NCBI GenBank assembly: GCA_028826165.1
Contig: JAPDFW010000069.1
Coordinates: forward strand, 62,001-126,000
Direction: 5' to 3'
Length of the DNA stretch: 64,000 nt
Source: Anaeramoeba ignava BMAN
Lineage: Eukaryota > Protista > Anaeramoebae
Made by a program: the position numbers and the translations under genes. Of this stretch, positions 16,201-41,181 are shown piece after piece. The notes beneath the pieces were generated by a model. It saw only the letters and a program-made list of their open reading frames with translations. It ran no database searches and was not told the DNA's origin. Numbering within the stretch: position 1 is the stretch's first letter; each line of letters opens with the position of its first letter.

Positions 16201-19200
16201 GTTCCAATCAATTCAAAAAGTAAATTGATGATATTTACATTTATGAAATGTGAATTTTCTTTTAAAAAATGAGACATGATTTTATATCCATTCATTCTTT
16301 CAAATTCTTTTAAGTTTGTGTAATTTAAATTAATTAAATTAACTAAAATTGCGAATAGTTGTTGGAAATGAATTTCTGTTGTAATTTTTTCAAATAATAA
16401 AAAGCAAATAATCGGTCCTCCAATTTTAGATATTTGCATAATAGCTCCTTTAGAGAGAAAAGCATTAGCATTTCCTGAAAGAATTCCATATGGTTTCCCA
16501 TTCAAAATTGCAAGATTTTGTATTGATAATGATTGTTTCAAAAAATTCTCATTTTTGTAATTGGATTCTTTATTTTGAGAATTTATTTCTTCAATTTTTT
16601 CATTTTCACTTTCATTTAAAATATTTTCCAATACTTTTTTTGTATGAATTGGACTCAAACAAAAAATCAATTTTTCATTTACTATTGGAATAGAAGCTAT
16701 TGAAAGATCCAATTGTTTCATAATATCTTCAAAATTTTCTCCATTTTTGAAAAGATTATCAACAATATAATTATTAACAATTTGAAAATTTGTAAATTGT
16801 GAAAATGGATTGATAAAAGATCCTGAATAATTAGGTCCAAGTAAAAATATTTTTTGAATATCTTGCAAACTTAAAGCAGATTCATAAAGAAAGCATGATC
16901 CTAATTTCCATTTTATATGGGGTGGATTTTCTGAAATGTTTTCATTTCCTTAAAAGAAAAATTATTTATTAAAATTTAAAATTTAAAATTAAAATTAAAA
17001 TTGAAATTAATTACCAATAACAAATTTAAAAGGAGATTGGATTGAATTTGGATAGTTAATTTTGCGAGTTTGTTTAGAAGAACCATCAACAAATAATGTA
17101 ATTGAAGATTGTGTAAATTTATGTTTAGAATGAACAATAACAGCATGATACCAATGAAATTCTCGAAATTTAAATTTGTCAAATGAAATGGAAGAATTTG
17201 AAGATGAAGTGATCGATAATTTTCCATTAGAAATTGAGAATATCATTTCTAGTTGATTTTTGGAAGAAAAAACGCTAAAAAGGTTAATAGGTTGATTTTC
17301 CTTTTTTTGAGTGAAAATTTCGCCGAAAGAATCAAAATATATCCAAAATGATAAAGAATATGAAGAAGAAGGAGGCCACGATTTATCATTTGAATATTCC
17401 AGAGACAATTTGGCATTTGATGATTCTTGGAGATCAAATTCAATAAAAGAAGGTTGATTTCCATCATGAATCATTGATTTGAATGCTGATAAAATTGAAT
17501 TTGGAATGTTTTTGTTTTTCTTAAATAACCGGAAAAACTTGCGAAATTCTTTGATTGAGGAATTGCTTGTTTGAATCATTTGAAGAAAGTTTGTTAGAAC
17601 TGGATTCAATAAATTATCTTCATCGAAAAGAAATTCTTGATATTTTTTCATCAATAAAGTCGAAATTTTCACAGAATTCATTTTGGTTTTGTTTATATGA
17701 TTAACATGAGCAAGAACGAGTATTTTTGTCATTAACTCAGCTGCAGATTCTAATGGTATATCCTTCATCAAATCTACAACAACCATAATTGGATGAGGAA
17801 AAACAATTTTCAGTTTTGATGAATCAGGAACAAGTGTGTTGTTTGTATGAAGTAATTCATTTGATAGTATTGATAAATCAAGTAACAAACAAAATAGATG
17901 ATATTTTTGTGAATTTTTGAGTAAACTATGGAAATTTCCTGAGCGAGTAATTGAATTAACCAATTTTTCATGTGTGTAAATGTGATGGAAATGTATTTGA
18001 TTGATTTTTGAATCTGATAGTGAACAAATGATCATTTGGAATAAATTTTGAAGAAATTGATTTTGTGCTTCAATATTTTGAATTTTCACTAAGCTTTCTG
18101 GAAGTATTTTGTTGAAAATGATTTCATAACCTTGAATTTTTTGGAAATGAACTTGTGAGGTTTGGTTTTTTTTAAAGATTGAAGTTAAACAAATTAAAAA
18201 TGCTGTATATAATGATAATTGGGTTATTTTCATTGAAGATATTTCATCAAGAATTAACTTAATAATATCAAGTTTTTGTGCTTTATCTTGTATTGCGAGA
18301 CTTTCAATCAATGATAATACTAATTGTTGATAATTTTTCAATTTGATCAATTCAAATAATAAATTAATTCCTTTCTTTTCATAAAGTAAGTTCATATTTT
18401 CCAAATTATCATTCACAAAAAATTCAATAGTTTGAATATAAAAGATGATTAAATTTGTTGATTGAGATTTCTTTTGGTATCTATATTTGTTTTGAGAAAT
18501 TTCTTTTTGAATATAAGTGTAAATTGAATTAAATAAACCAAGTTGGAATATTATTGTTTTGAATTCATTTTTGAATGATATTAAGTCCTTAAAAAGATTT
18601 GTGATTAATTGAACAACCTCAATTTTGGGATTGTTTTTAAATAATTGTATTAAAACTTTTAAATCTAATTTAGGTGTAATTTGGAGGGAAGAAGCAACAA
18701 ATTTGATAATTTTAAGCAAATCAACCTATTTTTTTTAAATTTTAAATTTATTTTAATTTTAAATTTATTTTAATTTTAAATTTATTTAAATTTATAATTT
18801 TACTTGAATTTCATTTTCATATAAAGGAAATTTTGCAAGAACCAATTCAATAACTTTGGATTGACTCATCACATAATAATTATGTGGATTTTTTTGAAGA
18901 ATTAAGAATAATTGTTGAAGAGTAAATAACGATAATTGTTTAAATGAAGAATTTGCTGAAAGTAAGAAAATATTAGATAAAATTTGCAAAGCATCAGTAT
19001 TTTGAATTGAAAAATTTGTATTGATTTCTTTTTCTTGATCAAAAATGGATTTAATATTAAAATCTCCACAAAAAACAAGAGATGAAATATTTTTGATAAT
19101 TGATTCCAAATCTGATATTGAAGTTGATTTGTTATGAAGCATATCAGCTACAATTTTTCCAAATAATTTATATCCTGATAGTTTTATAAATTCATCAAAA

Positions 19201-22200
19201 AATTTATGAGTTTTTGGAAAAGAAGAAATGAGTAAATTAATAATAAATGAAATTGAGTTTGAAATTCTGAATGAACTTAATTTTGATGTTTCTGAAAGTG
19301 TTTCAAGTTGAATTTTAATTATGTTTTTTGTTTGGATATAAAAAATCAAATTTTCATTCATAAATTGTGATAAAATTAATTGAGAAACATTTTGAAGTTT
19401 TTTAATTAGATAATTTTTGTTAGAATTAGAGTTTATAATTTCGAAAAGGATTATTAATGTATCAGATTGAATAAGTTGATCAATAGATTTTTGATTTTTA
19501 GAATTTTCTTGAAGAATATCAACAAATAAAAGAATAAAATCATTTTCTGTTTCATTTCTATTTTCATTTTCTATATAAAAATAATAATAATAATAAAAAT
19601 AAAAACTTCAATTTGTTTTTAAATAAATTAAATATAAATAACACAAACTTTCTTGATTATTATTTTCTTCATAAGAAATTTGATTTAAATCAAATTGAGA
19701 GAATAATTTTAAAAAATTTAATAAATTTAAAGTTAACTTTGAATTTAGAAGAGATTCAATATTAATTTCTTGTTGTGATAATAAAAGAAGTGTTGCAGAT
19801 AATTGAAAGTAATAGATATTATTTTGATGATTTATTGGGAAATTAATAATTTTAGAAAGTAAATTAGGATCAGAAGAATTGATTTCTTTTGTTAATTTAA
19901 TTAATAAATTGATGAAATATTTTGCAATAACGAAAGAGAAATTTCTAGTATCACCAAATCTTTTTTTAATATAAATTTTATTAAATAATTTTATAAATAA
20001 TTTTATAAATAATTTTATATTTAATTTTATAATTAATTTTATAAATAATTTTATAAATAATTTTATAAATAATTTTATAAATAATTTTATAAATAATTTA
20101 ATAAATAATTTTATAATTAATTTTATAAATAATTTAATAAATAATTTTATGAATAATTTTATAATTAATTTTATATTTAATTTTATAAATAATTTTATAA
20201 ATAATTTTATAATTAATTTTATAAATAATTTAATAAATAATTTTATGAATAATTTTATAAATAATTTTATAAATAATTTTATAAATAATTTTATAAATAA
20301 TTTTATAATTAATTTAATAAATAATTTTATAAATAATTTTATAAATAATTTTATATTTAATTTTATAATTAATTTTATAAATAATTTTATAAATAATTTT
20401 ATATTTAATTTTATAAATAATTTTATAAATAATTTTATATATAATTTTATAAATAATTTTATAAATAATTTTATAAATAATTTTATAAATAATTTTATAA
20501 TTAATTTTATAATTAATTTTATAAATAATTTTATATATAATTTTATAAATAATTTTATAAATAATTTAATAAATAATTTTATATTTAATTTTATAAATAA
20601 TTTTATAATTGATTTTATATTTAATTTTATATATAATTTTATAAATAATTTTATAATTAATTTTATATTTAATTTTATATATAATTTTATATTTAATTTT
20701 ATAAATAATTTTATATATAATTTTATAATTAATTTAATAAATAATTTTATAATTAATTTTATAAATAATTTTATAAATAATTTTATAAATAATTTAATAA
20801 ATAATTTTATAAATAATTTTATAAATAATTTTATAAATAATTTTATAAATAATTTTATAAATAATTTTATAAATAATTTTATAAATAATTTTATAAATAA
20901 TTTTATAAATAATTTTATAAATAATTTTATAATTAATTTAATAAATAATTTTATAATTAATTTAATAAATAATTTAATAAATAATTTTATAATTAATTTT
21001 ATAAATAATTTTATAATTAATTTTATAAAATAATTTTATAAATAATTTTATAAATAATTTTATAAATAATTTTATAAATAATTTTATAAATAATTTTATA
21101 ATTAATTTTATAAATAATTTTATAAATAATTTTTATAAATAATTTTATAATTAATTTTATAAATAATTTTTTAATAAATAATTTAATAAATAAATTTATA
21201 AATAATTTTATAAATAATTTTATAAATAATTTTATATTTAATTTTATAATTAATTTTATAATTAATTTTATAATTAATTTTATAAATAATTTTATAAATA
21301 ATTTTATAAATAATTTTATAAATAATTTTATAAATAATTTTATAAATAATTTTATAAATAATTTTATAAATAATTTTATAAATAATTTTATAAATAATTT
21401 TATATTAAATTTTATAAATAATTTTATAAATAATTTTATAAATAATTTTATAAATAATTTTATAAATAATTTAATAAATAATTTAATAAATAATTTTATA
21501 AATAATTTTATAATTAATTTAATAAATAATTTTATAAATAATTTTATAAATAATTTTATAAATAAATTTATAAATAATTTTATAAATAATTTTATAAATA
21601 ATTTTATAAATAATTTTATATTTAATTTTATAAATAATTTAATAATTAATTTTATAAATAATTTTATATTAAATTTTATAAATAATTTTATAAATAATTT
21701 TATAAATAATTTTATAAATAATTTTATAAATAATTTTATAAATAATTTTATAAATAATTTTATAAATAATTTTATAAATAATTTTATAAATAATTTTATA
21801 AATAATTTTATAAATAATTTTATAAATAATTTTATAAATAATTTTATAAATAATTTTATAATTAATTTTATAAATAATTTTATAAATAATTTTATAAATA
21901 ATTTTATAAATAATTTAATAAATAATTTTATAAATAATTTTATAAATAATTTTATAAATAATTTTATAAATAATTTTATAAATAATTTTATAATTAATTT
22001 TATAAATAATTTTATAAATAATTTTATAAATAATTTTATAAATAATTTTATATTTAATTTTATAAATAATTTAATATTTAATTTTATATTTAATTTTATA
22101 AATAATTTTATATTTAATTTTATAAATAATTTTATAAATAATTTAATAAATAATTTTATTATTAATTTTATAAATAAGTTTTGTTTTAGATTTCTATTTT

Positions 22201-23830: not shown

Positions 23831-26800
23831 TCATTTAAATCCAATAGGTAAATCAATCTTCATCTTATGATTTGTTGTGGATTCATTAAGATTTAATCGA
23901 GATTTACCCTTTTTCCCAGCTTTTAAAATTTTGACATCTTTTCCAAAAATTTTCGCCTTTCCGGCATGAACCAAATCCATAGCAAAATCAACAGATTCAG
24001 GATTAGCAAAAGTAACAAAAGCATATTGAACAGAACCCAAAATCTTATGCCTTTTCTTATGAGTTTTCAAGACAACACGTTCAATAACACCGCAACGATG
24101 AGAATAGAAAAGTTTCTTAACATGATCTTCATTTACACCATAAAGAAGTGGAGTAACATAAATGGTTCGTTCCAGAACTTCTGTATGAGTGACCTCGATA
24201 TGATGAGACATGTCCCAGTTAAACTCTCTTGATTGGGAAACTTGAGTAAGAATTGTGGAGATATTAACAAGTCCTAGTTGTGTGATCTTATTACTTGCAA
24301 GTGAAAGAAATTTGAGATTGCATTTGTTTTCGGGTGAGGCAATTGTTTGTGCAAGTTGAGAAGCACCTGAATCTTTGATGAGATTAAGCTTGAGACGGAG
24401 CGTGAGAAGGGAGGAGTTTTGGGCGAGGACTTTGGAGAGGATCTTAGCGCCTCTGTCGCGGATTCGGTTGAGACCAAGATCCAGAGTGTGGAGATTTTTG
24501 TTCTCGGCTAGCGCTTTCTCAAGGGATTCAATACCGGAAACATCGATGAAGTTTCCGTAGAGATTGAGGATCTGGAGATGTGTGTTGGACTTGAGAACAG
24601 AAGCAAAGGCGGCTGCGCCTGTAGAGCCGAGAGAGTTGCAAGTCAAGTCGAGATGAGTTAAAGTAATATTTGACAGCAATCCTCGGCAAAGTGATTTGAC
24701 ACCGTGTCTTCCAATGTTGTTGTTCGAGAGATCCAAAAACACAAGGTTTGTGTTCTTTGCGAGATTGTCTCCAATCGCTGTTGCTGCTTCGGTTCCTAGA
24801 CCGCAGGAAACGAGGCTCAAATGCACAAGAGGGAGAATATTGAGCAATTTTGAGCCGATGATTTTCCCATAGAGCTTGCGTATTCCTCCCGAATTCAAGC
24901 GATTCTTGTCGAGAATAAGTTCTCGAAGTGCAGAGGGTTTGACTTTCTTGGGGAATTGTGCGCGGGCTTGCTCAATACGAGTGCATAAGGTTTCAAGACC
25001 TGATCCAGTGATTGAGTTTGATTTCAAATTGATTTTTTCAATTGAAGAATTATAAGCAAGCATTTCTCCAATAGCACTTAAATGGGAATCTGATATTCTG
25101 CAGAAGGATAAGTCGATTTCTTTGAGAGTATGATTTTTGGCGAGGGAATCCATGACTGGTTTTGTGATTGCAAATGCGACGCCTGATTTATTTAGACGTA
25201 AAGTTTTCAAAGAAATTGTTAAATCAAAAAGTGTGCAAAACGCTTTCGATAAATTTTCTGTTGTTGTTATTCTCCCGCCGCGTTGATCAGCAAGATCAAG
25301 AACCTGCATATTTGAGTTGTATGCGGCACACTCAACAATTTCAGCGAGCCCAATGCCTGAGATGTTATTATGGGCGACTCTGAAAACTTCGAGATTGCGT
25401 TTTACTAAGAGAACTTTGGAAACATCTTTGCATCCCTCATCGCCAATATTGCATCGAGAGATATCCAAGTGCCGCAGATTGGGGAACTGTTCGTGACGAC
25501 AGAGAACTTTGGCCAGACGAGAAACACCTAGATTGCCCAGGGAGCCGTTGCCGCCGATCAAAAGCATTTCGAGATGATTTCCTGATAATGTTTCGTCGAA
25601 AAGCTCGCGCAATGCTGAGCTATCTATCCCGCAGTCCCACATGTCCAGAGTGCGAAGAGACTCCGAGTTGTGTCGAAGTCCCTTGATAAGAGCCTTGAAA
25701 ATCTTTGCGTTCATTGCGCTTTCTCCTTTGATGATTTTCAAAGTGGAAAGCTGAGTTAGAGAAGTAAGTAAAACTGTCAAAAAATTATATCGTGTTTTTA
25801 AGTTTGTGGGCTGGAATGTGGTGAATTCAAAGCTGCGAATGATCGGGTTCGAGAGTTGCAGAAGACGGTGCAAAAGCGCGAAATTGGGATTGTCATTGAG
25901 TTTGGAGATGAAATCTTGGAGATTATTCTGGACATAAGCGTGGCGCCATGGGAATTTTATATCTTGTGGTGCGTCCTGAGGAAGAGCCTTAAGACCCCAA
26001 CGCTGATCACAAAGCTCTCTGAACATCAGCTCATCTTCGATAAGAGCCTCCTGTTGAGACTCGTTGTCTTGGTCGATGAACCGCTCAAGAGAAAAAAGAT
26101 CTTCCATGCGCTGTTTCGCTTCGTTGTCTTGGTTCGTTAAAGACGCTCTTTCCCCATGATACCCTTTCTCTCGACTCCCGTTCAATCCCTCAGAGATGTA
26201 TTCAAAGACGTCCTTCGGCTTCTCTATCCCCAATGCCGAAAAAAATTGATCATAATTCGATATGTTTTTGATCAACTTGATTTTTTGAACGAAAATTTCC
26301 TCGTTCTCCAGTGTTGGGAAGCCGTTGTTTTTGTTGTACTGCACAAGAGCGTTTTCGACAGAGAACTTGGGCTTGATTGAGTGGGCAATATCTTTGAGAA
26401 AGTGGATGTGGAAAAGAAGGAATTTGTTGCCAATTGCTGAAGCCTCAAAAGATTTTTCAATAACATCATTTTTGGAAAATTTAGTTGTTGTTCCGTTTTT
26501 GATTAATTCCAATTGCTGAATCCAGGGGAACTTGCGGATGATCCAGTAAATCTGTCTGTCGCGACTTTCCTCAAGATAGAAATCCCTTATTTGCTCCCAG
26601 GGAGTTCCTGTGATTGAGAGAAGCGAGAGGAAATCACCCAAACTAGGTGTCGCATCTTTTTCGCGTTTTTTGGGGTTTTTGATAAAGTTTTCAATGCGGT
26701 TGCGCGCTTCTTCAACAATGCCCGGATACTTGCTGCAAAATGCCAAGAACAGATGATGGATTGCGCAGTATCCTTGGAGATCTTTGATTGAGCCGTGGAT

Positions 26801-27979
26801 GCTCCCTTTCATCACATTTGTCACCATTGTGTTCATCAGCTTCGGAATCACTGCGAGAACAAACGACTCTTCAAAACGACTTGATGTGCCAGCAACAATC
26901 AGACTCAATGCGCGCTCCGCAAGATGCATTGCTTTATTCATGTTATTTTCGTTGATAATCAAAGGCATCCAATGAGTAAACGGTCCGCCGCTCGGAGATT
27001 CTCTCACTTTCATGTTCATAAAAGCGCGCAAAGAGAGATAATCAAAGAAGCAATTAATTGAGGAGATGTCATTTGAGCGCGGATTGCGGATGAAATTCAG
27101 TCCAACGCCAATCGCATCCTCTTCAAAAGTCTGTCGAGTAAAAAAACATCTCAATTGTTGTTTTTGAAGAATTTCTCGAGATTTTTGGGGAATATTAACA
27201 CCAGATGAAACTGGCGGCCAAGGTGTGCTTGGCGGGTTATGCTTGCAATTTGGATCAGGACATTTTGTGCGCAGAGATTGCTTTACAGCCCATTGAACAG
27301 ATCCGAGCCAGTTTTTCTTCTCCTCTTCATAACGACTTGAATCTGTCAAATTTTCAAGTGCCACGTCAACATTTGGTTCAAGTAAGAAAGTTTGGATATG
27401 AAGTAAAAGAGTGGAAATTGAGAAAGCAGGCGACCAACCTTCCGCAGAATTATCGATGGTGTTTTTGGAGTAATCGAGAGCAATGCTCATTGCTTGGGAA
27501 ATATTAACGGCCTGACCGAGCGCGCAGGGATGCTTGAGTCTGACAAGCGAAGTAATAAGTGGCGGTTTTTGGGGGTAATCATTAGTGAATGTAAGTGTGA
27601 AATGAAAGATCCCCCCTTCCCAAGGGGTATCTGGAGGACCCATTATATTTGCATGCCAAATAAACAGATTATCCCCAAGAGGTTGAGCGTTGATGTATGG
27701 AATCGGGTTCTCGTTGATTTCCTTAAGATCACGCATCAGCCGTTTTGATGCTGTTGTTTTTTTCTTCCCCATTGATCCTTTGGGCAATGTTGATGTTACT
27801 GTTGTTCGCTTTTGATACCGAAACCCTTTTCTTCGTCTTCTGGGTGGTGTTGCTGTTGGTGATATTACAATTCCTGGTAATGTTGGTATTGGTAATTGAT
27901 TGAATTGTGGTGAATAATTGAATGATTGTGGAAGTTTTGATTCAGGAACTCTACGTGGTTTTGCTCTTCTTCTTCTCAT
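23831..27979 (-). CDS. Multidomain protein: UBC/E2-fold domain (catalytic Cys absent), uncharacterised domain, RI-type LRRs, C-terminal RRM; single exon
   Basis: KRLMRDLKEI..WHANIMGPPDTPWEGGIFHF..YPQKPP..WSPAFSI; many LxxLxLxxNxI repeats; IYVTPL...YAFVTF. Confidence 0.85.
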   Translation of the reverse strand: MRRRRAKPRRVPESKLPQSFNYSPQFNQLPIPTLPGIVISPTATPPRRRRKGFRYQKRTTVTSTLPKGSMGKKKTTASKRLMRDLKEINENPIPYINAQPLGDNLFIWHANIMGPPDTPWEGGIFHFTLTFTNDYPQKPPLITSLVRLKHPCALGQAVNISQAMSIALDYSKNTIDNSAEGWSPAFSISTLLLHIQTFLLEPNVDVALENLTDSSRYEEEKKNWLGSVQWAVKQSLRTKCPDPNCKHNPPSTPWPPVSSGVNIPQKSREILQKQQLRCFFTRQTFEEDAIGVGLNFIRNPRSNDISSINCFFDYLSLRAFMNMKVRESPSGGPFTHWMPLIINENNMNKAMHLAERALSLIVAGTSSRFEESFVLAVIPKLMNTMVTNVMKGSIHGSIKDLQGYCAIHHLFLAFCSKYPGIVEEARNRIENFIKNPKKREKDATPSLGDFLSLLSITGTPWEQIRDFYLEESRDRQIYWIIRKFPWIQQLELIKNGTTTKFSKNDVIEKSFEASAIGNKFLLFHIHFLKDIAHSIKPKFSVENALVQYNKNNGFPTLENEEIFVQKIKLIKNISNYDQFFSALGIEKPKDVFEYISEGLNGSREKGYHGERASLTNQDNEAKQRMEDLFSLERFIDQDNESQQEALIEDELMFRELCDQRWGLKALPQDAPQDIKFPWRHAYVQNNLQDFISKLNDNPNFALLHRLLQLSNPIIRSFEFTTFQPTNLKTRYNFLTVLLTSLTQLSTLKIIKGESAMNAKIFKALIKGLRHNSESLRTLDMWDCGIDSSALRELFDETLSGNHLEMLLIGGNGSLGNLGVSRLAKVLCRHEQFPNLRHLDISRCNIGDEGCKDVSKVLLVKRNLEVFRVAHNNISGIGLAEIVECAAYNSNMQVLDLADQRGGRITTTENLSKAFCTLFDLTISLKTLRLNKSGVAFAITKPVMDSLAKNHTLKEIDLSFCRISDSHLSAIGEMLAYNSSIEKINLKSNSITGSGLETLCTRIEQARAQFPKKVKPSALRELILDKNRLNSGGIRKLYGKIIGSKLLNILPLVHLSLVSCGLGTEAATAIGDNLAKNTNLVFLDLSNNNIGRHGVKSLCRGLLSNITLTHLDLTCNSLGSTGAAAFASVLKSNTHLQILNLYGNFIDVSGIESLEKALAENKNLHTLDLGLNRIRDRGAKILSKVLAQNSSLLTLRLKLNLIKDSGASQLAQTIASPENKCNLKFLSLASNKITQLGLVNISTILTQVSQSREFNWDMSHHIEVTHTEVLERTIYVTPLLYGVNEDHVKKLFYSHRCGVIERVVLKTHKKRHKILGSVQYAFVTFANPESVDFAMDLVHAGKAKIFGKDVKILKAGKKGKSRLNLNESTTNHKMKIDLPIGFK

Positions 27980-28184: not shown

Positions 28185-29966
28185 ATGAATGATTGTTTAT
28201 TTTTTGGTTGGAATAAATATCCAAAACTTATCAAAAATAAACCAAATAAAATAACAAAACCAATTCAATTTAAATTTGAAAATGAAAATGAAAATGAAAA
28301 TGAAAAACAAATTAAACAAATTTCAACAGGAAATTATTCAATAATTTTCCTTTTTAAAAATGGAAAAGCAATAGAATATTTAAATGAAGAAGATTCAAAA
28401 CAAAATCCTCAAAAAATCCAAATTGAAGAAAATATTCAAAAAGTAACTGTTGGTGATGAAAATGAAGCTATTTTAACAAAAGAAGGAAATGTATTTGCCA
28501 AAGGAGAATATATTAATGCAGAAGATATATATGAATTTATCAATATTTCATCATTAATTGAAGATACAAATGATAGAATAATTAAAGATATTATTTCTGG
28601 AAACAATTCAATTTACTTATTAACTTCAAATCAAAATGTTTATGGAATTGGTTCAAATGATTTTGGTCAACTTGGCTTTGATTCTAAAACACTTGAAAAA
28701 ACAGAAAAACCAATTTTAATGATGAAAAATGTTTCTAAAATATTTTCAGGAAATTTCTCATATTTTGTTTTTCTTTTAAATTCAAATCAAGAATTATTTG
28801 GATGCGGATATAATGAATATGGTCAACTTGGATTAGGAGAAGCAACAAAAGAAGAATCAATCAAAAAATTAACCAAAATACAAAATATTCCAAAAGGTAA
28901 AATAATTGATATTCAATGTGGATTTACTCATTCAATAATGTTGATTGAAAATGAAAATGAAAATCCAAAAAGAAAACTTTATTCATGCGGTTATGACAGA
29001 TATAATGGACTTGGAAAAAATGGAATTAAAAATACTTATGAATTTACTGAAATCAAATCACCTTTATTTGAAAATGATGATAATATTCTTGATTTTTCTG
29101 TTGGATCTTCTCATAATTTGGTTTTAATTTCCAAAGGGAAATTAATAGTATTTGGAAATAATAATTTTGGTCAATTAGGAAATATAGATACAAAGTTTAT
29201 CAAAAATCCGATTCAAATTAAACTTCCTAAATTAAGATTTAATGAAGATATTTCCAATTATCATATTTCTTGTGGTGTTTACAGATCATTTCTTTATTAT
29301 TCTCCTTCTTCTTTTTCCAATTTTGAAGAAGATTTGATAAAATTATTTAGAAGAAAAGAATTTTGTGATATTTCATTTAAAACAGAAAATGGAGAAATAA
29401 TTAAAGCTCATAAATTAATATTAAAATATAGATTAAATCAAAATCAAAATGAAATTGAAAAACTTAAAGAAATTATTTCAAAAAAATCAATTAAAGAATC
29501 AAATCAAATATTTGAAATGATTTATTCAAACAGAATAATAAATCCAAAATTATATTCTGAAATTAAAGAAATTATAAATTCAAATGAAAAAATTGAAGAA
29601 ACAATGAAAAGAATTTATTTAAATGAAAATGAAAATGAAAATGAAAATGAAAAAGATTTTATTATTGAAAGAAAAGAAAAACAATATAAATTTCCAAAAT
29701 TAATATTAATAATGAGAAGTGAATTATATCGAGGAATGTTTTTATCTGTTACAGAAGATAAATCTAATAAAGTTACAGATTATAGTGAATTAAGTAATAA
29801 ATCATTTCAAATATTTGAATATTGGATTTATTCAAATCAAATTAAAGATGAAATTCAAATTACACAAGAAATAATTGACGAAATAGAAAGAGGAATTGAT
29901 TATTTTCAATTAAATCAAACAAATCCAAATTTATTTGATTTATTAATTAACAAATTTAATAATTAA
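28185..29966 (+). CDS. RCC1-repeat beta-propeller plus tandem BTB/POZ-like protein, copy 1
   Basis: GxNxxGQLG and IxxGxxHS repeats; FCDISF..IKAHKLIL and KDFII..FPKLILIMRSELYRGMF BTB-like motifs; intronless. Confidence 0.9.
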   Translation: MNDCLFFGWNKYPKLIKNKPNKITKPIQFKFENENENENEKQIKQISTGNYSIIFLFKNGKAIEYLNEEDSKQNPQKIQIEENIQKVTVGDENEAILTKEGNVFAKGEYINAEDIYEFINISSLIEDTNDRIIKDIISGNNSIYLLTSNQNVYGIGSNDFGQLGFDSKTLEKTEKPILMMKNVSKIFSGNFSYFVFLLNSNQELFGCGYNEYGQLGLGEATKEESIKKLTKIQNIPKGKIIDIQCGFTHSIMLIENENENPKRKLYSCGYDRYNGLGKNGIKNTYEFTEIKSPLFENDDNILDFSVGSSHNLVLISKGKLIVFGNNNFGQLGNIDTKFIKNPIQIKLPKLRFNEDISNYHISCGVYRSFLYYSPSSFSNFEEDLIKLFRRKEFCDISFKTENGEIIKAHKLILKYRLNQNQNEIEKLKEIISKKSIKESNQIFEMIYSNRIINPKLYSEIKEIINSNEKIEETMKRIYLNENENENENEKDFIIERKEKQYKFPKLILIMRSELYRGMFLSVTEDKSNKVTDYSELSNKSFQIFEYWIYSNQIKDEIQITQEIIDEIERGIDYFQLNQTNPNLFDLLINKFNN

Positions 29967-30180
29967 AATTAAAATTAAAATTAAAATTAAAATCAAAATT
30001 AAAATCAAAATTAAAATTAAAATTAAAATTAAAATTAAAATTAAAATTAAAATTAAAATTAAAATTAAAATTAAATTTAAAATCAAAATTAAAATTAAAA
30101 TTAAAATTAAAATTAAAATTAAAATTAAAATTAAAATTAAAATTAAAATTAAAATTAAAATTAAAATTAAAATTAAAATC
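29967..30180 (+). repeat. (AAAATT)n intergenic microsatellite
   Basis: Near-perfect hexamer run between RCC1-BTB copies 1 and 2. Confidence 0.9.
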
Positions 30181-30207
30181 AATTTTTCATTTTTTTCTTT
30201 TCAAAAA

Positions 30208-31976
30208 ATGAATGAAATTATATTTTTGGTCACAATAAATATCCAAAACTTATCAAAAATGAACCAAATGAAATAACAAAACCTATTCAATTTAAATTTG
30301 AAAATGAAAATGAAAATGAAAATGAAAAACAAATTAAACAAATTTCATCAGGAAATTATTCAACAATTTTCCTTTTTAAAAATGGAAAAGCAATAGAATA
30401 TTTAGATGAAGAAGATTCAAAACAAAATCCTTATAAAATCCAAATTGAAGAAAATATTCAAAAAGTAACTGTTGGTTATGATAATAAAGCTATTTTAACA
30501 AAAGAAGGAAATGTATTTGCCAAAGGAGAAAATATTAATCCAAAAGAATTTATCAATATTTTATCATTAATTGAAGATAAAAATGATATAATAATTGAAG
30601 ATATTGTTTCTGGAGATAGTTCAGTTTACTTATTAACTTCAAATCAAAATGTTTATGGAATTGGTTCAAATCAATTAAGTCAACTTGGTTTTGATTCTAA
30701 AACACTTGAAAAAACAGAAAAACCAATTTTAATGATGAAAAATGTTTCTAAAATATTTTCAGGAAATTCTTCACTTCATGTTTTTCTTTTAAATTCAAAT
30801 CAAGAATTATTTGGATGCGGAAATAATAGATCTGGTCAACTTGGATTAGGAGAAGCAACAAAAGAAGAATCAATCCAAAAATTAACCAAAATCCAAAATA
30901 TTCCAAAAGGCAAAATAATTGATATTCAATGTGGATTTACTCATTCAATAATGTTGATTGAAAATGAAAATCAAAATCCAAAAAGAAAACTTTATTCATG
31001 TGGAAATGACAGATATAATGGACTTGGCAAAAATGGAATTAAAAATACTTATGAATTTACTGAAATCAAACCATCTTTATTTGAAAATGATGATAATATT
31101 CTTGATTTTTCTGTTGGAGTTAATCATACTTTGATTTTAACAACAAAAGGGAAATTAATAGGATTTGGAAGAAATAATTATGGTGAATTAGGAATTGGAT
31201 ATACAAAGTTTACCAAAAATCCAATTCAAATTGAACTTCCTAAATTAAGATTTAATGAAAATATTTCTAATTATCATATTTCTTGTGGAGAATGTAAAAC
31301 ATTTCTTTATTATTCTCTTTCTTTTTCCAATCTTGAAGAAGATTTGATAAAATTATTTAAAAGAAAAGAATTTTGTGATATTTCATTTAAAACCAAAAAT
31401 GGAGAAATAATCAAAGCTCATAAATTAATATTGAAATATAGATTAAATCAAAATCAAAATGAAATTGAAAAACTTCAAGAAATTATTTCAAAAAAATCAA
31501 TTAAAGAATCAAATCAAATATTTGAAATGATTTATTCAAACAGAATTATAAATCCAAAATTATATTCTGAAATTAAAGAAATTATAAATTCAAATGAAAA
31601 AATTGAAGAAACAATGAAAAGAATTTATTTAAATGAAAATGAAAATGAAAATGAAAAAGATTTTATAATTGAAAGAAAAGAAAAACAATATAAATTTCCT
31701 AAATTAATATTAATAATGAGAAGTGAATTATATCGAGGAATGTTTTTATCTGTTACAGAAGATAAATCTAATAAAGTTACAGATTATAGTGAATTAAGTA
31801 ATAAATCATTTCAAATATTTGAATATTGGATTTATTCAAATCAAATTAAAGATGAAATTCAAATTACACAAGAAATGATTGACGAAATAGAAAGAGGAAT
31901 TGATTATTTTCAATTAAATCAAACAAATCCAAATTTATTTGATTTATTAATTAACAAATTTAATAATCAAAATTAA
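30208..31976 (+). CDS. RCC1-BTB-BTB copy 2; one T missing at codon 6-7 (assembly error or pseudogene)
   Basis: ATG at 30208; T5 run at 30223-30227 versus T6 in copy 3. The frame from 30228 is open and continuous with ORF 30732-31976. Confidence 0.82.
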
Positions 31977-32094
31977 ATTTAAAATTAAAATTAAAATCAA
32001 ATTTAAAATTAAAATCAAAATCAAATTCAAAATCAAAATTAAAATTTAAAATTCAAAATTCATTTTTTTCTTTTCAAAAAAATTAAAAAATAAA

Positions 32095-33267
32095 ATGAAT
32101 TCAAAACAAGAAATTAATTTTGAAGATTTTGGAAATGATGAAATTGAAACAGTAGTTTTTGATTGTGGAACTGAAACAACAAAAATTGGATTTGCAGGAG
32201 ATGATGCACCAAGAGCAGTTTTCCCATCCATAGTAGGAAGAATGAGACATGTTGGTCTTATGGGAGTTGGGATGGGGATGAAGGATGCTTATGTTGGAGA
32301 TGAAGCAATGTCTAAAAGAGGAATTTTGAATTTAAAATATCCAATAGAAAAAGGAATAATAACAAATTGGGATGATATGGAAAAAATTTGGCATCATAGT
32401 TTTTATAATGAATTAAGAGTTGCTCCTGAAGAGCATCCTTTATTATTTGCAGATTTTTGTTTAAATACAAAGGAAAACCAAGAAAAAATTACTCAAATTA
32501 TGTTTGAAACATTTAATGTTCCAGCTTTATATTTGGAAAAAGCAGAAATTTTTTCTTTGCTTGATTCAGGAAAAACATCAGGATTGATTCTTCAATCAGG
32601 AAATGATTCAACTTATTGTGTTTCTATTTTTGAAGGAGAAATTTTAAATGATTCATTTACAAAAATGGATTTTGCAGGAAAATCAATTTCGGATTATTTA
32701 ACTAAATTATTGAACCAAAAAGATGGTTATTCTTTTACTACTTTTTCTGAAAAAGAAATTGTTCAAAATATTAAAGAAAAACTTGGTTATGTTGCTTTGG
32801 ATTTCGAAGAAGAAATGAAAAAAGAAGAAAAACTAATTCAGAAAGATTATGAACTTCCTGATGGACAAATTATTCAAATTGGAAAAGAAAGATTTTTATC
32901 AACAGAATGCTTATTTAAACCTTCTTTGATTGAAATGGAAGAGGATTCGATCGACAAAATTCTTTACAATTCAATTATAAAAACTGAAGATGAAATCCAA
33001 AAAGAAATTATTGATAATATCATTTTATCAGGTGGAACAACAATGTTTTCTGGAATCAAAGAAAGATTAGAAAAAGAAATCAATCAACTAATCAAACAAG
33101 AAAAGAAAATTCAAATTATTTCACCTCCTGAAAGAAAATACTCAGTTTGGATTGGAGGATCAATTTTTGCTTCACTTTCTGGTTTTTTTAATTTATGTAT
33201 TTCATATCAAGAATATGATGAAAATGGACCAACAATAATCCACAAAAAAAACAAGAAAAATTTTTGA
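32095..33267 (+). CDS. Divergent actin paralog, intronless
   Basis: [72 protein letters not shown]. Confidence 0.92.
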
Positions 33268-33338
33268 TTGAATTGTCTTGAGAAATTATTTTCTTTCATT
33301 TTTCATTTTTCATTTTTTCATTTTTTACTTTTCTAAAA

Positions 33339-35096
33339 ATGAATGAAATTATATTTTTTGGTGAAAATAAATATCCAAAACTTATCAAAAATGAACCAAA
33401 TAAAATAACAAAACCAATTCAATTTAAATTTGAAAATGAAAATGAAAATGAAAATGAAAATGAAAAACAAATTAAACAAATTTCTTCTTCAAATGATTCA
33501 ACAATTTTCCTTTTAAAGAATGGAAAAGCAATAAGATATTCAAATCAAAATCCTTCAAAAATCCAAATTGAAAATATTCAAAAAGTAACTGTTGGTGATC
33601 AAAACGAAGCTATTTTAACAATAGAAGGAAATGTATTTGCCAAAGGAGAATATATTAATCCAGAAAACCCAAAAGAATTTATCAATATTTCATCATTAAT
33701 TGAAGATACAAATGATAGAGTAATTAAAGATATTGTTTCTGGAAGAGATTCAATTTACTTACTAACTTCAAATCAAAATGCTTATGGAATTGGTTCAAAT
33801 AATTGGGGTCAACTTGGAGTTGATTCTAAAACACTTGAAAAAACAGAAAAACCAATTTTAATAATGAAAAATGTTTCTAAAATATTTTCAGGAATTTCTT
33901 CACTTCATGTTTTTCTTTTAAATTCAAATCAAGAATTATTTGGATCTGGAAATAATGTACATGGTCAAATTGGATTAGGAGAATCAATAAGAAGAAAACA
34001 AATCAAAATCCAAAAGCCGACTAAAATCCAAAATATTCCAAAAGGCAAAATAATTGATATTCAATCTGGATATTCTCATTCAATAATGTTGATTGAAAAT
34101 GAAAATCAAAATCCAAAAAGAAAACTTTATTCATGTGGATTTTGGAAAGATAATGGATTTGGGAAAGATATGAGAAAATTTACTGAAATCAAATCATCTT
34201 TATTTGAAAATGATGATTATATTCTTGATTTTTCTGTTGGATCTTCTCATAATTTGATTTTAACATCTAAATCAAAATTAATTGGATTTGGAGATAATTA
34301 TAATGGTGAATTAGGAATTGAATATTCAAAGTTTATCAAAAATCCGATTCAAATTAAACTTCCTAAATTAAGATTTAATGAAGATATTTCTAATTATCAT
34401 ATTTCTTGTGGATTTCAAAAATCATTTCTTTATTATTCTCCTCCTTCTTTTTCCAATCTTGAAGAAGATTTGATAAAATTATTTAGAAGAAAAGAATTTT
34501 GTGATATTTCATTTAAAACCAAAAATGGAGAAATAATCAAAGCTCATAAATTAATATTAAAATATAGATTAAATCAAAATCAAAATCAAAATCAAATTGA
34601 AAAACTTCAAGAAATTATTTCAAATAAATCAATTAAAGAATCAAATCAAATATTTGAAATGATTTATTCAAACAGAATTATAAATCCAATATTATATTCT
34701 GAAATTAAAGAAATTATAAATTCCAATGAAAAAATTGAAGAAACAATGAAAAGAATTTATTTAAATGAAAATGAAAAAGATTTTATAATTGAAAGAAAAG
34801 AAAAAGAATATAAATTTCCAAAATTAATATTAATAATGAGAAGCGAATTATATCGAGGAATGTTTTTATCTGTAACAGAAGATAAATCTAATAAAGTTAC
34901 AGATTATAGTGAATTAAGTAATAAATCATTTCAAATATTTGAATATTGGATTTATTCAAATCAAATTAAAGAAGAAATTCAAATTACACAAGAAATTATT
35001 AATGAAACTAAAAAAGGAATTGATTATTTTCAATTAAATCAAACAAATCCAAATTTATTTGATTTATTAATTAACAAATTTAATAATCAAAATTAA
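33339..35096 (+). CDS. RCC1-BTB-BTB copy 3
   Basis: Collinear with copy 1; C-terminal half nearly identical. Confidence 0.9.
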   Translation: MNEIIFFGENKYPKLIKNEPNKITKPIQFKFENENENENENEKQIKQISSSNDSTIFLLKNGKAIRYSNQNPSKIQIENIQKVTVGDQNEAILTIEGNVFAKGEYINPENPKEFINISSLIEDTNDRVIKDIVSGRDSIYLLTSNQNAYGIGSNNWGQLGVDSKTLEKTEKPILIMKNVSKIFSGISSLHVFLLNSNQELFGSGNNVHGQIGLGESIRRKQIKIQKPTKIQNIPKGKIIDIQSGYSHSIMLIENENQNPKRKLYSCGFWKDNGFGKDMRKFTEIKSSLFENDDYILDFSVGSSHNLILTSKSKLIGFGDNYNGELGIEYSKFIKNPIQIKLPKLRFNEDISNYHISCGFQKSFLYYSPPSFSNLEEDLIKLFRRKEFCDISFKTKNGEIIKAHKLILKYRLNQNQNQNQIEKLQEIISNKSIKESNQIFEMIYSNRIINPILYSEIKEIINSNEKIEETMKRIYLNENEKDFIIERKEKEYKFPKLILIMRSELYRGMFLSVTEDKSNKVTDYSELSNKSFQIFEYWIYSNQIKEEIQITQEIINETKKGIDYFQLNQTNPNLFDLLINKFNNQN

Positions 35097-35155
35097 AATC
35101 AAAATTAAAATTAAAAATTCCAAAATTATTTTTTTCATTTTTTTTCTTTTAAAAA

Positions 35156-36928
35156 ATGAATGAAATTTTATTTTTTGGTTCAAATTCTTATCCAAAACTT
35201 ATCAAAAATAAAACAGATAAAATAACAAAACCAATTCAATTTAAATTTGAAAATGAAAATGAAAATGAAAATGAAAAACAAATTAAACAAATTTCATCAG
35301 GAGATTTTTCAACAATTTTCCTTTTTAAAAATGGAAAAGCAATAGAATATTTAAATGAAAATGATTCAAATCAAAATCCTTCAAAAATCCAAATTGAAGA
35401 AAATATTCAAAAAGTAACTGTTGGTAATAGAAATGAAGCTATTTTAACAAAAGAAGGAAATGTATTTGCCAAAGGATATGATATTAATCCAGATAATCCA
35501 AATGAATTTATCAATATTTCATCATTAATTGAAGATAAAAATGATAGAATAATTCAAGATATTGTTTCTGGTGCTTATTCAGTTTACTTATTAACTTCAA
35601 ATCAAAATGTTTATGGAATTGGTTTTAATGGATATGGTCAACTTGGTTTTGATTCTGAAACACTTGAAAAAACAGAAAAACCAATTTTAATGATGAAAAA
35701 TGTTTCTAAAATATTTTCAGGAAATTCTTCATTTCATGTTTTTCTTTTAAATTCAAATCAAGAATTATTTGGATGCGGTTATAATGATGATTGTCAAATT
35801 GGATTAGGAGAATCGAGAAAAGAATTAATGATCCAAAAGCCAACCAAAATACAAGATATTTCAAAAGGTAAAATAATTGATATTCAATGTGGATGGTATC
35901 ATTCAATAATTTTGATTGAAATTGAAATTGAAAATGAAAATCCAAAAAGAAAACTTTATTCATGTGGTTATTGGAAAGATAATGGACTTGGCAAATATGA
36001 AGATACTTATGAATTTACTGAAATCAAATCATCTTTATTTGAAAATGATGATAATATTCTTGATTTTTCTGTTGGATCTTCTCATACTTTGATTTTAACT
36101 TCCCATTTAAAATTTATAGTATTTGGATATAATTCTTATGGCCAATTAGGAACTGGAGATACAAATAATCAATTAATTCCAATTCAAATTGAACTTCCTG
36201 AATTAAGATTTAATGAAGATATTTCCAATTATCATATTTCTTGTGGATCTTACAAATCATTTCTTTATTATTCTCCTCTTTCTTTTTCCAATCTTGAAGA
36301 AGATTTGATAAAACTATTTGAAAGAAAAGAATTTTGTAATACTTCATTTAAAACCGAAAATGGAGAAATAATTGAAGCTCATAAATTAATATTGAAATAT
36401 AGATTAAATCAAAATCAAAATCAAATTGAAAAACTTCAAGAAATTATTTCAAAAAAATCAATTAAAGAATCAAATCAAATATTTGAAATGATTTATTCAA
36501 ATAATTCCAAAATAAATCCAAAATTATATTCTGAAATTAAAGAAATTATAAATTTAAATGAAAAAATTGAAGAAACAATGAAAAGAATTTATTTAAATGA
36601 AAATGAAAAAGATTTTATAATTGAAAGAAAAGAAAAAAAATATAAATTTCCAAAATTAATATTAATAATGAGAAGTGAATTATATCGAGGAATGTTTTTA
36701 TCTGTAACAAATGATACTTCTAATAAAGTTACAGATTATAGTGAATTAAGTAATAAATCATTTCAAATATTTGAATATTGGATTTATTCAAATCAAATTA
36801 AAGATGGAATCGAAATTACACAAGAAATGATTGACGAAATAGAAAGAGGAATTGATTATTTTCAATTAAATCAAACAAATCCAAATTTATTTGATTTATT
36901 AATTAAGAAATTTAATAATCAAAATTAA
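35156..36928 (+). CDS. RCC1-BTB-BTB copy 4
   Basis: Collinear with copies 1-3. Confidence 0.9.
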   Translation: MNEILFFGSNSYPKLIKNKTDKITKPIQFKFENENENENEKQIKQISSGDFSTIFLFKNGKAIEYLNENDSNQNPSKIQIEENIQKVTVGNRNEAILTKEGNVFAKGYDINPDNPNEFINISSLIEDKNDRIIQDIVSGAYSVYLLTSNQNVYGIGFNGYGQLGFDSETLEKTEKPILMMKNVSKIFSGNSSFHVFLLNSNQELFGCGYNDDCQIGLGESRKELMIQKPTKIQDISKGKIIDIQCGWYHSIILIEIEIENENPKRKLYSCGYWKDNGLGKYEDTYEFTEIKSSLFENDDNILDFSVGSSHTLILTSHLKFIVFGYNSYGQLGTGDTNNQLIPIQIELPELRFNEDISNYHISCGSYKSFLYYSPLSFSNLEEDLIKLFERKEFCNTSFKTENGEIIEAHKLILKYRLNQNQNQIEKLQEIISKKSIKESNQIFEMIYSNNSKINPKLYSEIKEIINLNEKIEETMKRIYLNENEKDFIIERKEKKYKFPKLILIMRSELYRGMFLSVTNDTSNKVTDYSELSNKSFQIFEYWIYSNQIKDGIEITQEMIDEIERGIDYFQLNQTNPNLFDLLIKKFNNQN

Positions 36929-37871: not shown

Positions 37872-40800
37872 ATGGCAAAACCAAGTAAATTTGATTACTT
37901 TTTTTTTCTCTAAATAGAATTTCCAAAAAAAATATTGGAATTAAAAATAATTTTTTTTTGAATAAAATTGAAAAATTAATATTAAACAATTGATTAAAAC
38001 AAATTTTAGGTTTAGGACCAAGAAAATTAGAAAGAAAAATATCAAGCCAAGTCTCAAATTGGAATTTAGTTGGTTCTCGATATGAACCACTTATTGTTTG
38101 TTATTAGAATTTTGTTTAAAATTAAAGAAAAAAAAAAGCATTTTTTTTTTAATATTTTAATATTTTAATATTTTAATAAAAATTAATAAATTTTTTTCGA
38201 TTGAACAGTTTTCTGAACAAGAAGAACTTGAAAAAAAGTTGAATGAAATTACTTCCAGTCTGCAATCTGAAGACTGGGAAACTCGAAACACGAGTATCAA
38301 AGGACTTCATGGTATTTTGAATGGAATAACAAGTGAAAATGCAACTGAATTCGTAATTTCACTTAAAAAAGTCAAATTTTCAACAACATTTTCCGAACTT
38401 GTTCAAGAAGAACGTTCCACAATTGCCAAAAATGCGTGCCGCCTCGTAGCACATGCCTCACGAGTTCTTGGCCGACATTTTGACTCATTGTTTGAGGGGG
38501 ATCTTTTCTACTCACTCTTGAAAAGAGTGCCTGTCAAAATCAAGGTGATTGCTGAAAGTGCACATTCCTGCATCAAACAAGTGATCAAGCAAACACCCTC
38601 TCCGAAGATCATCTCCGGCATTGAAGACACGATCAAGACCAGCAAGAGTGCGGTACAACGCGGATGCTGTGCAGAGTATCTTTTACTTCTCCTGAAGAAA
38701 TGGGATTCGAAAGTTTTCGAATCATTTTTGCATGAAATCCAAAATTCCGTTAAACTCACAATAGTTGATGCGAGAGAGAAAACTCGGTCTTGCGGAAGGA
38801 AATCTTTCTGGGAATTTTCTCGCGATTTCCCTGAACAAGCAGCCAAGATTTTTTCCGAATTGGATCCGCGAAATACCAAAACAATTCTCGAAGAGAAACA
38901 CGCACAAAACACACCTGATTCAAAAATTATGCAATTTTTGGGGGATCTTAAAATAAACCCAAATAAACAGACAAAAAAACACACCCCCAAAATTGACAGC
39001 TCTAAATCCAAAAAGAAATTGAGTATATCAAGTAGTCCTACCAAGCAGAATACAAAGAAACCCCAAGTGGTGCCATCGCCCAAAGTTTCGGGAAATTCCA
39101 AAATCAAAAAAACCCGCAAAACTCGTTCTTTGGCACCAATTCGCAAATCCACTGTGATTGCGACGAAAAAAATACCGAATTCAAATAGTCCCAAAAATGT
39201 CAATAATTCAAATAATTCAAATACTTCAAATAATTCAAATAATCAAAATTCAAATTCAGTTGATATCCGCACAATTGCAATCGGACTTAAATCAATCGAT
39301 GCGCGAACAAAAAACCAAGCGCTGGAAAACCTTCTTCATCTATCTTCGAGTGAAAACAGCACGCAACTCCAAGATAAAGAAGGATTCCAAAAAATGATAG
39401 AGCACTTGATCCGATTGATTTCGGACATGAGCATGAAGACCAAGCTTCTTGCTCTGAAAGTGACCAAAAACTTCATTGACAACTACACAGAGAACTTTGA
39501 GAAATCACTTGTTCCTGTTATTGAAGCATTGATTCCCCTTGTGAAGCTTCAGAAGCCGAAAATTGAGCAAATTATGCCTGAAATTTTCGATTTGATCCGA
39601 TCATGCTATGGAAGTTTGATTTTGATTCCCGCTTTTGTTCACGTCTTTAACGACCTCCCTCTTAAACATAAACACTCGGTTCTTCCTATCATGCTTGTCG
39701 TCTTTCGCGAAGACACGCAGAATTACTTTGGCTCTTCTGGAAGCACAAAAATTGTCATCCAAATGGCGCTTCCTCATCTCCAAAATAAAGATCAGCCAAT
39801 CCAAAGGCTTCTGGAAAATCTACTCCAAATTGTTGATGCTCATAATCACACAGATTTCATCAAACAAACCGATTCTCTGGTTGATCACGATAAAAAAATC
39901 ATTTATTCTGCTCTCGGATCTGAAAAGCCAGAAATCATTCAATCTTCTTTGAAAATTTCCAAACAAAAAAATCTTAAATTACAAACTACAAAATCCGAAA
40001 GCTCAAAACCTAAAAGAAATGACAAACAAGAAGAAAAAAAGAACGAAAAAAAAAATGTCAAAAAAAATGTAAAAAAAAATTTGCCAGTTCAAAAAACACA
40101 TAAATCTTCGAATTTAAAAACTTCAACAAAAACGAAGGTAATTGTGCAGAAAACACCATCAAAAAACATTACGAAAAAACAAGTTAAAAAAAAATCAGTG
40201 GCAAAAACAACAGCAGATGACAAAGAAGAAGCTGTTAAAAGCGAGACACTCCAAAATAATAACGTTCAGAAAGAGATCATTTCTTCTGATCTTATTACAA
40301 ACAAGGAAAATGAAAATAACGCAGACGAGATGAACGCAGAGAAGATTGAATCACTGCCAGAAATCGATGAAAAAATGATTGAAACAACAATATCCGCGCT
40401 TCTCATCTCTTTGACAGACAAGGACAATTCCGAACGCGGATTCGAAACACTCATTTCTCTCTCGCAAGAAAAAGTGGACAAAGTGTGGAACAAAACATTT
40501 GCGCTTGTGATTTTCCATTTGATGCATTTGTACTTTACAGAAGCGACCCAAGTGCAAAATATTTTGATTTTGGCAGATAGTTTAGCAAATAATCAAGAAG
40601 AATATTTCAAGCCTTGCACTTTGGAATTAGTGAAAGAGTTTTTCAAATCTTTCGAGAAAGTGTCGCCCACAAAACATCATGATTCCGCCCAGATTTTTTC
40701 CGTTATCTCAAGATCACTGGATCCGGAAACAGCAATTCATCAACTTTTAACATATATTGATCCAGCTCAACAAAATCATGTCATCTCAACAGCTTTGACT

Positions 40801-41181
40801 TATCTTGGCAAGTTTGTTCAATCTCTTGATAATCAAAAAGTTCGGCAGGTTTTGGATGTTTATTTCCACTTGATTATCAAGTATGTTTCTCATCCTCAAA
40901 TTTCTATTAGAAAAGCTGCTGTTTATTGTTTTGTTGATTTTTTTTCTGTTCTTGATCAAGCTTTATTTACTGATTATCTTAATCCAAAACTCCAAAATTC
41001 AAAAGATAATAAAGTTATTGTTTTGATTCAGCAAACAATTCGTGCTGAACAAGCAAAGAAATTAAAGAAAGAATCACAAGATGAAAAAAGCTCAATTCAA
41101 GAATTTGAAAATTTAAATGAAAATTTGAATGAAAATCAAAATTTGAATGAAAATCAAAATTTAAATGAAAATCAAAATTGA
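37872..41181 (+). CDS. CLASP-family (TOG/HEAT) microtubule-associated protein; 3 exons
   Basis: MAKP|SLGPRK...EPLI|FSEQEE joins ORF 38239. CLASP_N-like DWETRN, ERSTIAKNAC and DAREKTRSCGR; S/K-rich linker; C-terminal IRKAAVYCFV HEAT repeat. Confidence 0.82.

Follow-up and report, generated by a model that had tools for sequence, protein, structure and literature searches.

Hypervariable propeller loops on a constant double-BTB tail in a very large RCC1-BTB-BTB gene family of Anaeramoeba ignava

The F-box and MATH-BTB adaptors of nematodes and plants are described as large birth-death families in which a constant ligase-binding domain is joined to a positively selected substrate domain, and a role in degrading foreign proteins has been proposed for them (PMC8665587, citing Thomas 2006; PMC4063957). 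Concerted evolution combined with diversifying selection at a few positions per blade has been reported for the Podospora NWD/HET-E WD40 propellers and for the ANK/TPR repeats of fungal NOD-like receptors (NLRs) (PMC4986451). Here we analyse a 64,000-nucleotide window of the unicellular metamonad Anaeramoeba ignava BMAN (assembly GCA_028826165.1, contig JAPDFW010000069.1, positions 62,001 to 126,000 of the forward strand) with an array of four genes whose products each consist of an RCC1-like propeller and, after it, two BTB domains (RCC1-BTB-BTB). Like the F-box/MATH-BTB adaptors, the A. ignava family to which they belong is a large lineage-specific expansion in tandem clusters, with positive selection on its substrate-type domain and purifying selection on its BTB half. 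As in the Podospora NWD proteins, the selected positions recur from blade to blade on the predicted binding face of a propeller.

Translation and a Pfam search place the four genes on one strand (+), all of them intronless. Numbered in their order along the window, they are copy 1 (28185..29966; 593 aa, intact), copy 2 (30209..31976), copy 3 (33339..35096; 585 aa, intact) and copy 4 (35156..36928; 590 aa, intact), the last of which serves as the reference for residue numbering. The copies are 94-98% identical in DNA sequence over the BTB half and 88-92% over the propeller, which bears out a preliminary description of this locus that had pointed to four intronless paralogs with a near-identical BTB half and differences clustered in the propeller. 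Nine of the ten loop motif lists given there were reproduced letter for letter by a script, and the sixth was confirmed from the translation of copy 1 (G-Y-N-E-Y). The array of four also stands, with two corrections. A T run at ~30222-30227 in copy 2 is one T shorter than in the other copies and puts the ATG out of frame with the remainder, which is open thereafter to the stop; copy 2 was read with an X at this break, which may be an assembly error or may mark a pseudogene. In addition, a divergent, intronless actin-like gene (32095..33267, +) breaks the array between copies 2 and 3. Passed over in the earlier account, it belongs to a separate expanded set and not to the RCC1-BTB-BTB family. 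The spacer between copies 1 and 2 (29967..30208) consists of (AAAATT)n followed by a T-rich stretch. Named homologs of copy 4 among the matches listed (n = 120) are all from A. ignava and are 65-86% identical to it.

Per-site entropy across 131 full-length paralogs places the variation mainly in the propeller, which contains 27 sites above a threshold of 2.5 bits and has a mean entropy of 0.68 bits; the BTB half contains none and averages 0.21 bits. In copy 4 numbering, the 27 sites are residues 9, 11, 12, 50, 91, 92, 108, 140, 141, 159, 171, 191, 193, 209, 211, 224, 247, 248, 272, 274, 308, 309, 325, 327, 338, 365 and 366. The same sites were recovered, in the same ranking, from 48 further sequences that form a largely independent sample (Spearman rho 0.84), and this replication, together with the entropy contrast between the two halves, argues that the pattern is not due to chance. 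The loop strings of all 131 paralogs are distinct, loop sites vary nearly independently of one another (identity 0.15, 0.16 expected), and insertions and deletions are almost absent from the loops. Tyr, Trp, Phe, Asp and Arg make up 40% of the residues at variable sites vs 15% in the remaining propeller; the richness in these five residues noted earlier thus holds for Tyr, Trp, Asp and Arg, with hardly any contribution from Phe.

The propeller of copy 4 (residues 1-372; 35156..36271, +) is predicted by AlphaFold to form seven four-stranded blades, with a predicted local-distance difference test score (pLDDT) mostly above 85. Pfam assigns it to RCC1/WD40_RLD, and Foldseek confirms an RCC1-like fold, with RPGR, RCC1 and HERC2 as matches (TMt 0.75-0.8). 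In the model, the variable sites are not scattered; they fall on the A-B turns (G-x-x-H) and on the opening positions of the C-D loops (G-x-N-x-x-G). These are the two loop types per blade of the preliminary description, to which must be added a third, weaker class that closes each C-D loop (e.g., 171, 224 and 338). The A-B and C-D loops lie on one face in any four-stranded propeller blade. A sequence alignment matches the variable positions with the GWRHT and related tryptophan and arginine positions of UVR8, which are interface residues in that protein (PMC4501546). The assignment to one face thus draws on the order of the strands and on the alignment with UVR8, not on coordinates, and it predicts that ∼25-35 freely varying residues are presented on a single face of the propeller.

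Selection was assessed in a tree-free manner, from nonsynonymous (pN) and synonymous (pS) polymorphism among the 53 coding sequences that best match copy 1. The A-B loops afforded a pN of 0.585 and a pS of 0.273, and the C-D loops a pN of 0.556 and a pS of 0.215; the corresponding values are 0.072 and 0.089 for the remaining propeller and 0.028 and 0.075 for the BTB half (pN/pS 0.37). The loop classes were fixed after the entropy had been inspected, a circularity that the held-out 48-sequence set answers only in part. Loop pN is 6-7 times the gene-wide pS (0.09) and more than twice the local pS. Each loop site carries 9-19 codon alleles in the 53 copies vs ~2-6 expected at neutral rates. Lys, Ile and Leu, which are favoured by AT-biased mutation, are depleted 4-12-fold at the loops, and Tyr, Asp, Glu, Arg, Trp and Ser are enriched relative to that mutational expectation. 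The pN excess, the allele counts and the residue composition together make relaxed constraint an insufficient explanation. In the codeml-type comparison of nonsynonymous and synonymous rates (omega) that had been suggested earlier, M2a was preferred over M1a by a twofold log-likelihood difference of 1171-1744, with an omega of 5.1-5.7 at 5-9% of sites; because recombination among the copies is pervasive, the tree-based models are not relied on and an omega of ∼5 is inflated. The loops are under diversifying selection and the BTB half is under purifying selection, with the size of omega left uncertain by recombination and raised local silent variation.

Dimorphisms in the framework are in linkage equilibrium beyond ∼10 nt (r2 0.019 = 1/n), which points to intense gene conversion. 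All four gametes occur in 440 of 465 pairs of BTB dimorphisms, and clonal simulations on the fitted tree yielded 3-12 dimorphic sites with a mean r2 of 0.083, compared with 25 and 0.019 observed. These counts and simulations were used in place of a pairwise homoplasy index (PHI)-type test, which gave a weak result (p 0.013-0.07), as expected where linkage survives only at the shortest range. Trees of the propeller and of the BTB half differ by a Robinson-Foulds distance of 94 of 100, and in one tandem pair a tract of 335 nt is identical although the loops on either side have diverged fully. We infer that gene conversion is frequent across the whole family. Silent polymorphism is raised up to ∼7 nt from the loop codons: all 11 four-fold sites located 1 nt from a loop codon are variable vs ∼30% farther away, and fits by class give silent rates near the loops of 4-6 times background. 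Particular loop codons carry their own silent alleles. The width of this halo equals the range of linkage, so that hitchhiking explains it, but a local mutator may contribute to it. In a pair of copies that are 98.9% identical, 3 of 23 variable sites differ, all by single bases, with no burst of change in the loops.

The family comprises about 1,100-1,250 copies. A 26-nt DNA motif from BTB2 has 1,248 matches and a 25-nt propeller motif has 1,093 in the 42.8 Mb assembly, and the reversed patterns used as controls have none. Given a gene total of ~14,900, implied by 612 genes amounting to 4.1% (PMC11550330), the family accounts for ∼7-8% of A. ignava genes. Scaffold DNA identity across the more than 1,000 dispersed intronless copies is 92-96%. 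Copies are dispersed and often tandem, with a second copy within 1.45 kb in 34 of 60 flanks. The flanks contain (AAAATT)n satellite, a T-rich stretch precedes the ATG in almost every copy, and inspection of 53 flanks by eye showed no terminal inverted repeat, long terminal repeat or poly(A). Both A. ignava and A. flamelloides also have RCC1-BTB-BTB genes that are older and more divergent; few relatives were found in A. flamelloides, with identities of 25-28%. A hydrothermal-vent metagenome (run X6, compared with window positions 30185-36100) contains pieces of the BTB half and of the propeller with 0-6 differences, which suggests the presence of a wild relative that carries the family. Literature searches found no paper on this RCC1-BTB-BTB family. 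The main text of the genome paper mentions neither BTB nor RCC1, and in the portion of its supplement covered here the same PANTHER names occur only in a gene-transfer table, so that the family may still have a table entry elsewhere in it (PMC11550330).

The tail of copy 4 contains a reduced BTB1 (∼residues 379-461) and a BTB2 (∼471-589) in tandem (36290..36922, +). A first AlphaFold run modelled the BTB half with pLDDT below 50; with a deeper alignment the value rose to 95, and the half folds as two BTBs packed against each other as in a dimer, a predicted intramolecular pseudo-dimer that includes the BTB fold with its N-terminal dimerisation helix. By fold, the tail matches the tethered Miz1-BCL6 BTB pair best (Z 14.4; root-mean-square deviation 4.5 over 191 residues); by sequence, KBTBD4, KBTBD2 and SPOP are among the PDB entries nearest to BTB2. 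Tandem BTBs also occur in IBTK, LZTR1 and RhoBTB. Across 103 relatives (∼33% identity), the best conserved segment is the alpha3-beta4 region, with a near-invariant Asp, which suggests one common partner. Among 90 relatives with the same BTB-BTB tail, the head is an ankyrin domain in 47, RCC1 in 23, WD40 in 8 and Ras in 6, and armadillo heads occur as well; a single tail beneath such different heads is as expected of an adaptor module. The Ras-family GTPase heads (P0157, P0165, P0202 and P0209) give a RhoBTB-like architecture and are found in both Anaeramoeba species. The A. ignava genome contains ∼8 cullin loci. Judged from sequence and model, the tail probably works like a cullin adaptor.

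The preliminary description had read the family as a variable recognition domain on a constant tail, and this reading is well supported by the size of the family, the single set of variable loops, the excess of loop pN over gene-wide pS and the purifying selection on the BTB half. We propose that the family is a germline repertoire of ∼1,100-1,250 cytosolic binders whose constant double-BTB tail would tag foreign proteins bound by the variable propeller face, and we regard the case for this proposal as a whole as evenly balanced. Duplication, both tandem and ectopic, would multiply the copies, frequent gene conversion would keep the scaffold uniform and reassort loop variants, and selection for rare binding specificities would maintain loop diversity; that these three processes act jointly we consider highly probable. 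The tail would recruit a cullin-RING ligase, leading to ubiquitylation of the bound proteins, a step that we think somewhat probable. Should it do so, the targets would likely be fast-evolving non-self or selfish proteins, for which viral proteins and injected bacterial effectors are candidates. Beyond binding, every step of this mechanism is one that we infer.

Several results weigh against this proposal and bear on its rivals. When the silent rate was freed at loop codons, omega dropped to 0.5-1.4, and part of the loop signal could thus come from local mutation. Frame breaks occur in ∼10-12 of 30 unselected neighbouring copies in the assembly sequence, in which error and pseudogene are indistinguishable given that it was built from Nanopore reads and polished with Pilon (PMC11550330). 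Expression of the subfamily is no more than hinted at, by contigs from public runs X4 and X5 that match copy-specific stretches of copies 2, 3 and 4 exactly; a very deep actin signal makes these runs look like RNA, but their records do not label them so and read depth is an unsafe guide in such comparisons. In EukProt, two of the older family members are entered under names of the transcript-assembly type. Cul3 adaptors and ZBTB-type BTBs were not told apart by the fold search. A canonical phi-x-E motif was not found in BTB2, where an ungapped alignment places T-[E/N]-D, with an invariant Asp (Asp520), opposite L-K-E of KBTBD4 (36707..36715, + in copy 4); BTB1 is without the loop that bears the motif; and in the model the protein stops with helix 6 of BTB2, with no 3-box/BACK helices after it. 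Both phi-x-E and the 3-box aid Cul3 binding (PMC3616122). In the earlier proposal of these proteins as candidate receptors for Cul3 ligases, the double BTB of the tail is real; the fold fits the class of Cul3 adaptors, the phi-x-E position and the 3-box do not, and the proteins are at most putative members of that class. The same features, together with the Miz1-BCL6 match, would suit a binder repertoire that operates without a cullin, in which the double BTB would dock to a different constant partner or scaffold and the bound target would be sequestered or relocated. We consider this unlikely, since the alpha3-beta4 region, the site of Cul3 contact in known adaptors, is conserved better than any other part of the tail and retains its near-invariant Asp, and since ligase adaptors typically exchange heads while the BTB tail stays constant. 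The targets might instead be self proteins from the expanded families of the organism itself, such as Rab/Ras GTPases or the more than 100 divergent actins, with the propeller as a guanine nucleotide exchange factor (GEF)-like or degradation receptor. RCC1-like domains do bind small GTPases. Rabs are expanded in the genome (PMC11550330), one of the actins lies within the array and Ras-BTB-BTB fusions exist; this explanation predicts stable orthologs of fixed specificity, however, and we find it distinctly doubtful in view of a pool at linkage equilibrium in which every loop string is different and of the few, distant A. flamelloides relatives.

A further set of alternatives concerns how the loop diversity arose. 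A site-directed mutator or micro-conversion, and not selection alone, might write the loop codons, as could be read from the silent halo (11 of 11 four-fold sites at 1 nt, a reach of ∼7 nt, 4-6-fold silent rates) and from the many multi-nucleotide loop changes. However, a halo as wide as the linkage distance, with silent alleles that travel with their loop codons, needs nothing more than hitchhiking; the 98.9% identical pair differs at its three sites by single bases, loop composition departs from the mutational bias, and framework adenines are invariant, unlike in diversity-generating retroelements (DGRs), so that such a process seems quite improbable. Its boldest extension, in which more than 1,000 ubiquitin-ligase receptors would form an antibody-like immune library inside the cell, with loop codons actively diversified by dedicated local mutation or micro-conversion and reshuffled genome-wide, appears slightly less credible still. 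A DGR target as such was rejected, because framework adenines between the loops do not vary and the silent changes in the flanks fall on A as well as on T; no search for a template or reverse transcriptase was made. Dispersal in more than 1,000 intronless copies with 92-96% identical scaffolds, many with frame breaks, would also be expected of a repeat family that expands selfishly or neutrally and whose loops are under relaxed constraint, yet a BTB pN/pS of 0.37, nearly indel-free loops and a loop pN that is impossible under relaxation, and that largely rules out this reading, make it very improbable. No transposase domain was found in the proteins of the window and no terminal repeats were seen by eye in the flanks, and a transposable element was rejected on these grounds. 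Finally, cross-mapping of short reads during Pilon polishing of the Nanopore assembly might have created mosaics and loop variants, and polishing error may indeed account for some of the frequent frameshifts. As a general explanation it is scarcely conceivable, given that public-read contigs match copy-specific loop combinations with 0 differences (30799-30897, 35756-35828 and 35881-35952) and that mis-polishing would retain linkage over read lengths or pull sequences toward the consensus.

Several neighbouring features were recorded in the window. Head-to-head with copy 1 lies a gene (23831-27979, -) for a 1,382-aa protein that combines an E2 ubiquitin-conjugating domain, leucine-rich repeats (LRRs) and an RRM in one fusion, with a GC content of 42% vs ∼20% for the genome. 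Positions 19970-22000 are ∼2 kb of nearly pure A/T satellite (GC 0.2%), which gives rise to a spurious open reading frame (ORF) at 20149-21033. At 15210-18719 (-), ORFs that carry DUF4704 and concanavalin-like domains are probably exons of a neurobeachin/BEACH-type gene, and a CLASP-like gene (38239-41181, +) lies downstream of the array. The genome contains more than 100 actin-like loci, many in tandem, that are ∼36-69% identical to the actin-like gene at 32095-33267; actins are not discussed in the main text of the genome paper (PMC11550330).

The loops of one binder scaffold carry roughly 70 bits of diversity, and the family constitutes a natural map of the RCC1-propeller positions that are open to randomisation. 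If the tail recruits a cullin, the family would lend itself well to studying an idea of long standing, namely that ligase adaptors, once expanded, act as an intracellular immune repertoire. The host is a unicellular organism with bacterial symbionts, and the related A. pumila harbours Dot/Icm-bearing Legionellales (10.64898/2026.04.11.717937).

The proposed logic of the family would already be known from F-box/MATH-BTB adaptors, and selection at recurring positions of each blade from the NWD propellers. Unlike in the F-box/MATH-BTB families, the variable domain in A. ignava is an RCC1 propeller and the tail is a double BTB, and more than 1,000 copies share a 92-96% DNA-identical scaffold at linkage equilibrium in a unicellular metamonad. 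The Podospora NWD family consists of about ten genes in which repeats are shuffled within genes and the output is NLR-type cell death; in A. ignava, the blades differ from one another, exchange takes place at homologous positions among more than 1,000 genes, and the tail is a BTB. A propeller (RCC1 or other) combined with a BTB is also the architecture of RCBTB1/2, IBTK (PMC4447969), LZTR1 and RhoBTB, known or proposed Cul3 adaptors. These are low-copy, conserved proteins with fixed substrates, the A. ignava tail is without a BACK/3-box, and the likeness drawn here is one of architecture. With the RCC1-like domains of UVR8 and HERC proteins, the family shares the seven-bladed fold, and its variable positions are those of the UVR8 interface tryptophans and arginines, which are conserved in UVR8/HERC and hypervariable in A. 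ignava. What is new relative to the known adaptor and propeller repertoires is thus the use of an RCC1 scaffold with a tail of two BTBs, together with the scale of the family and the almost free reassortment of its loops.

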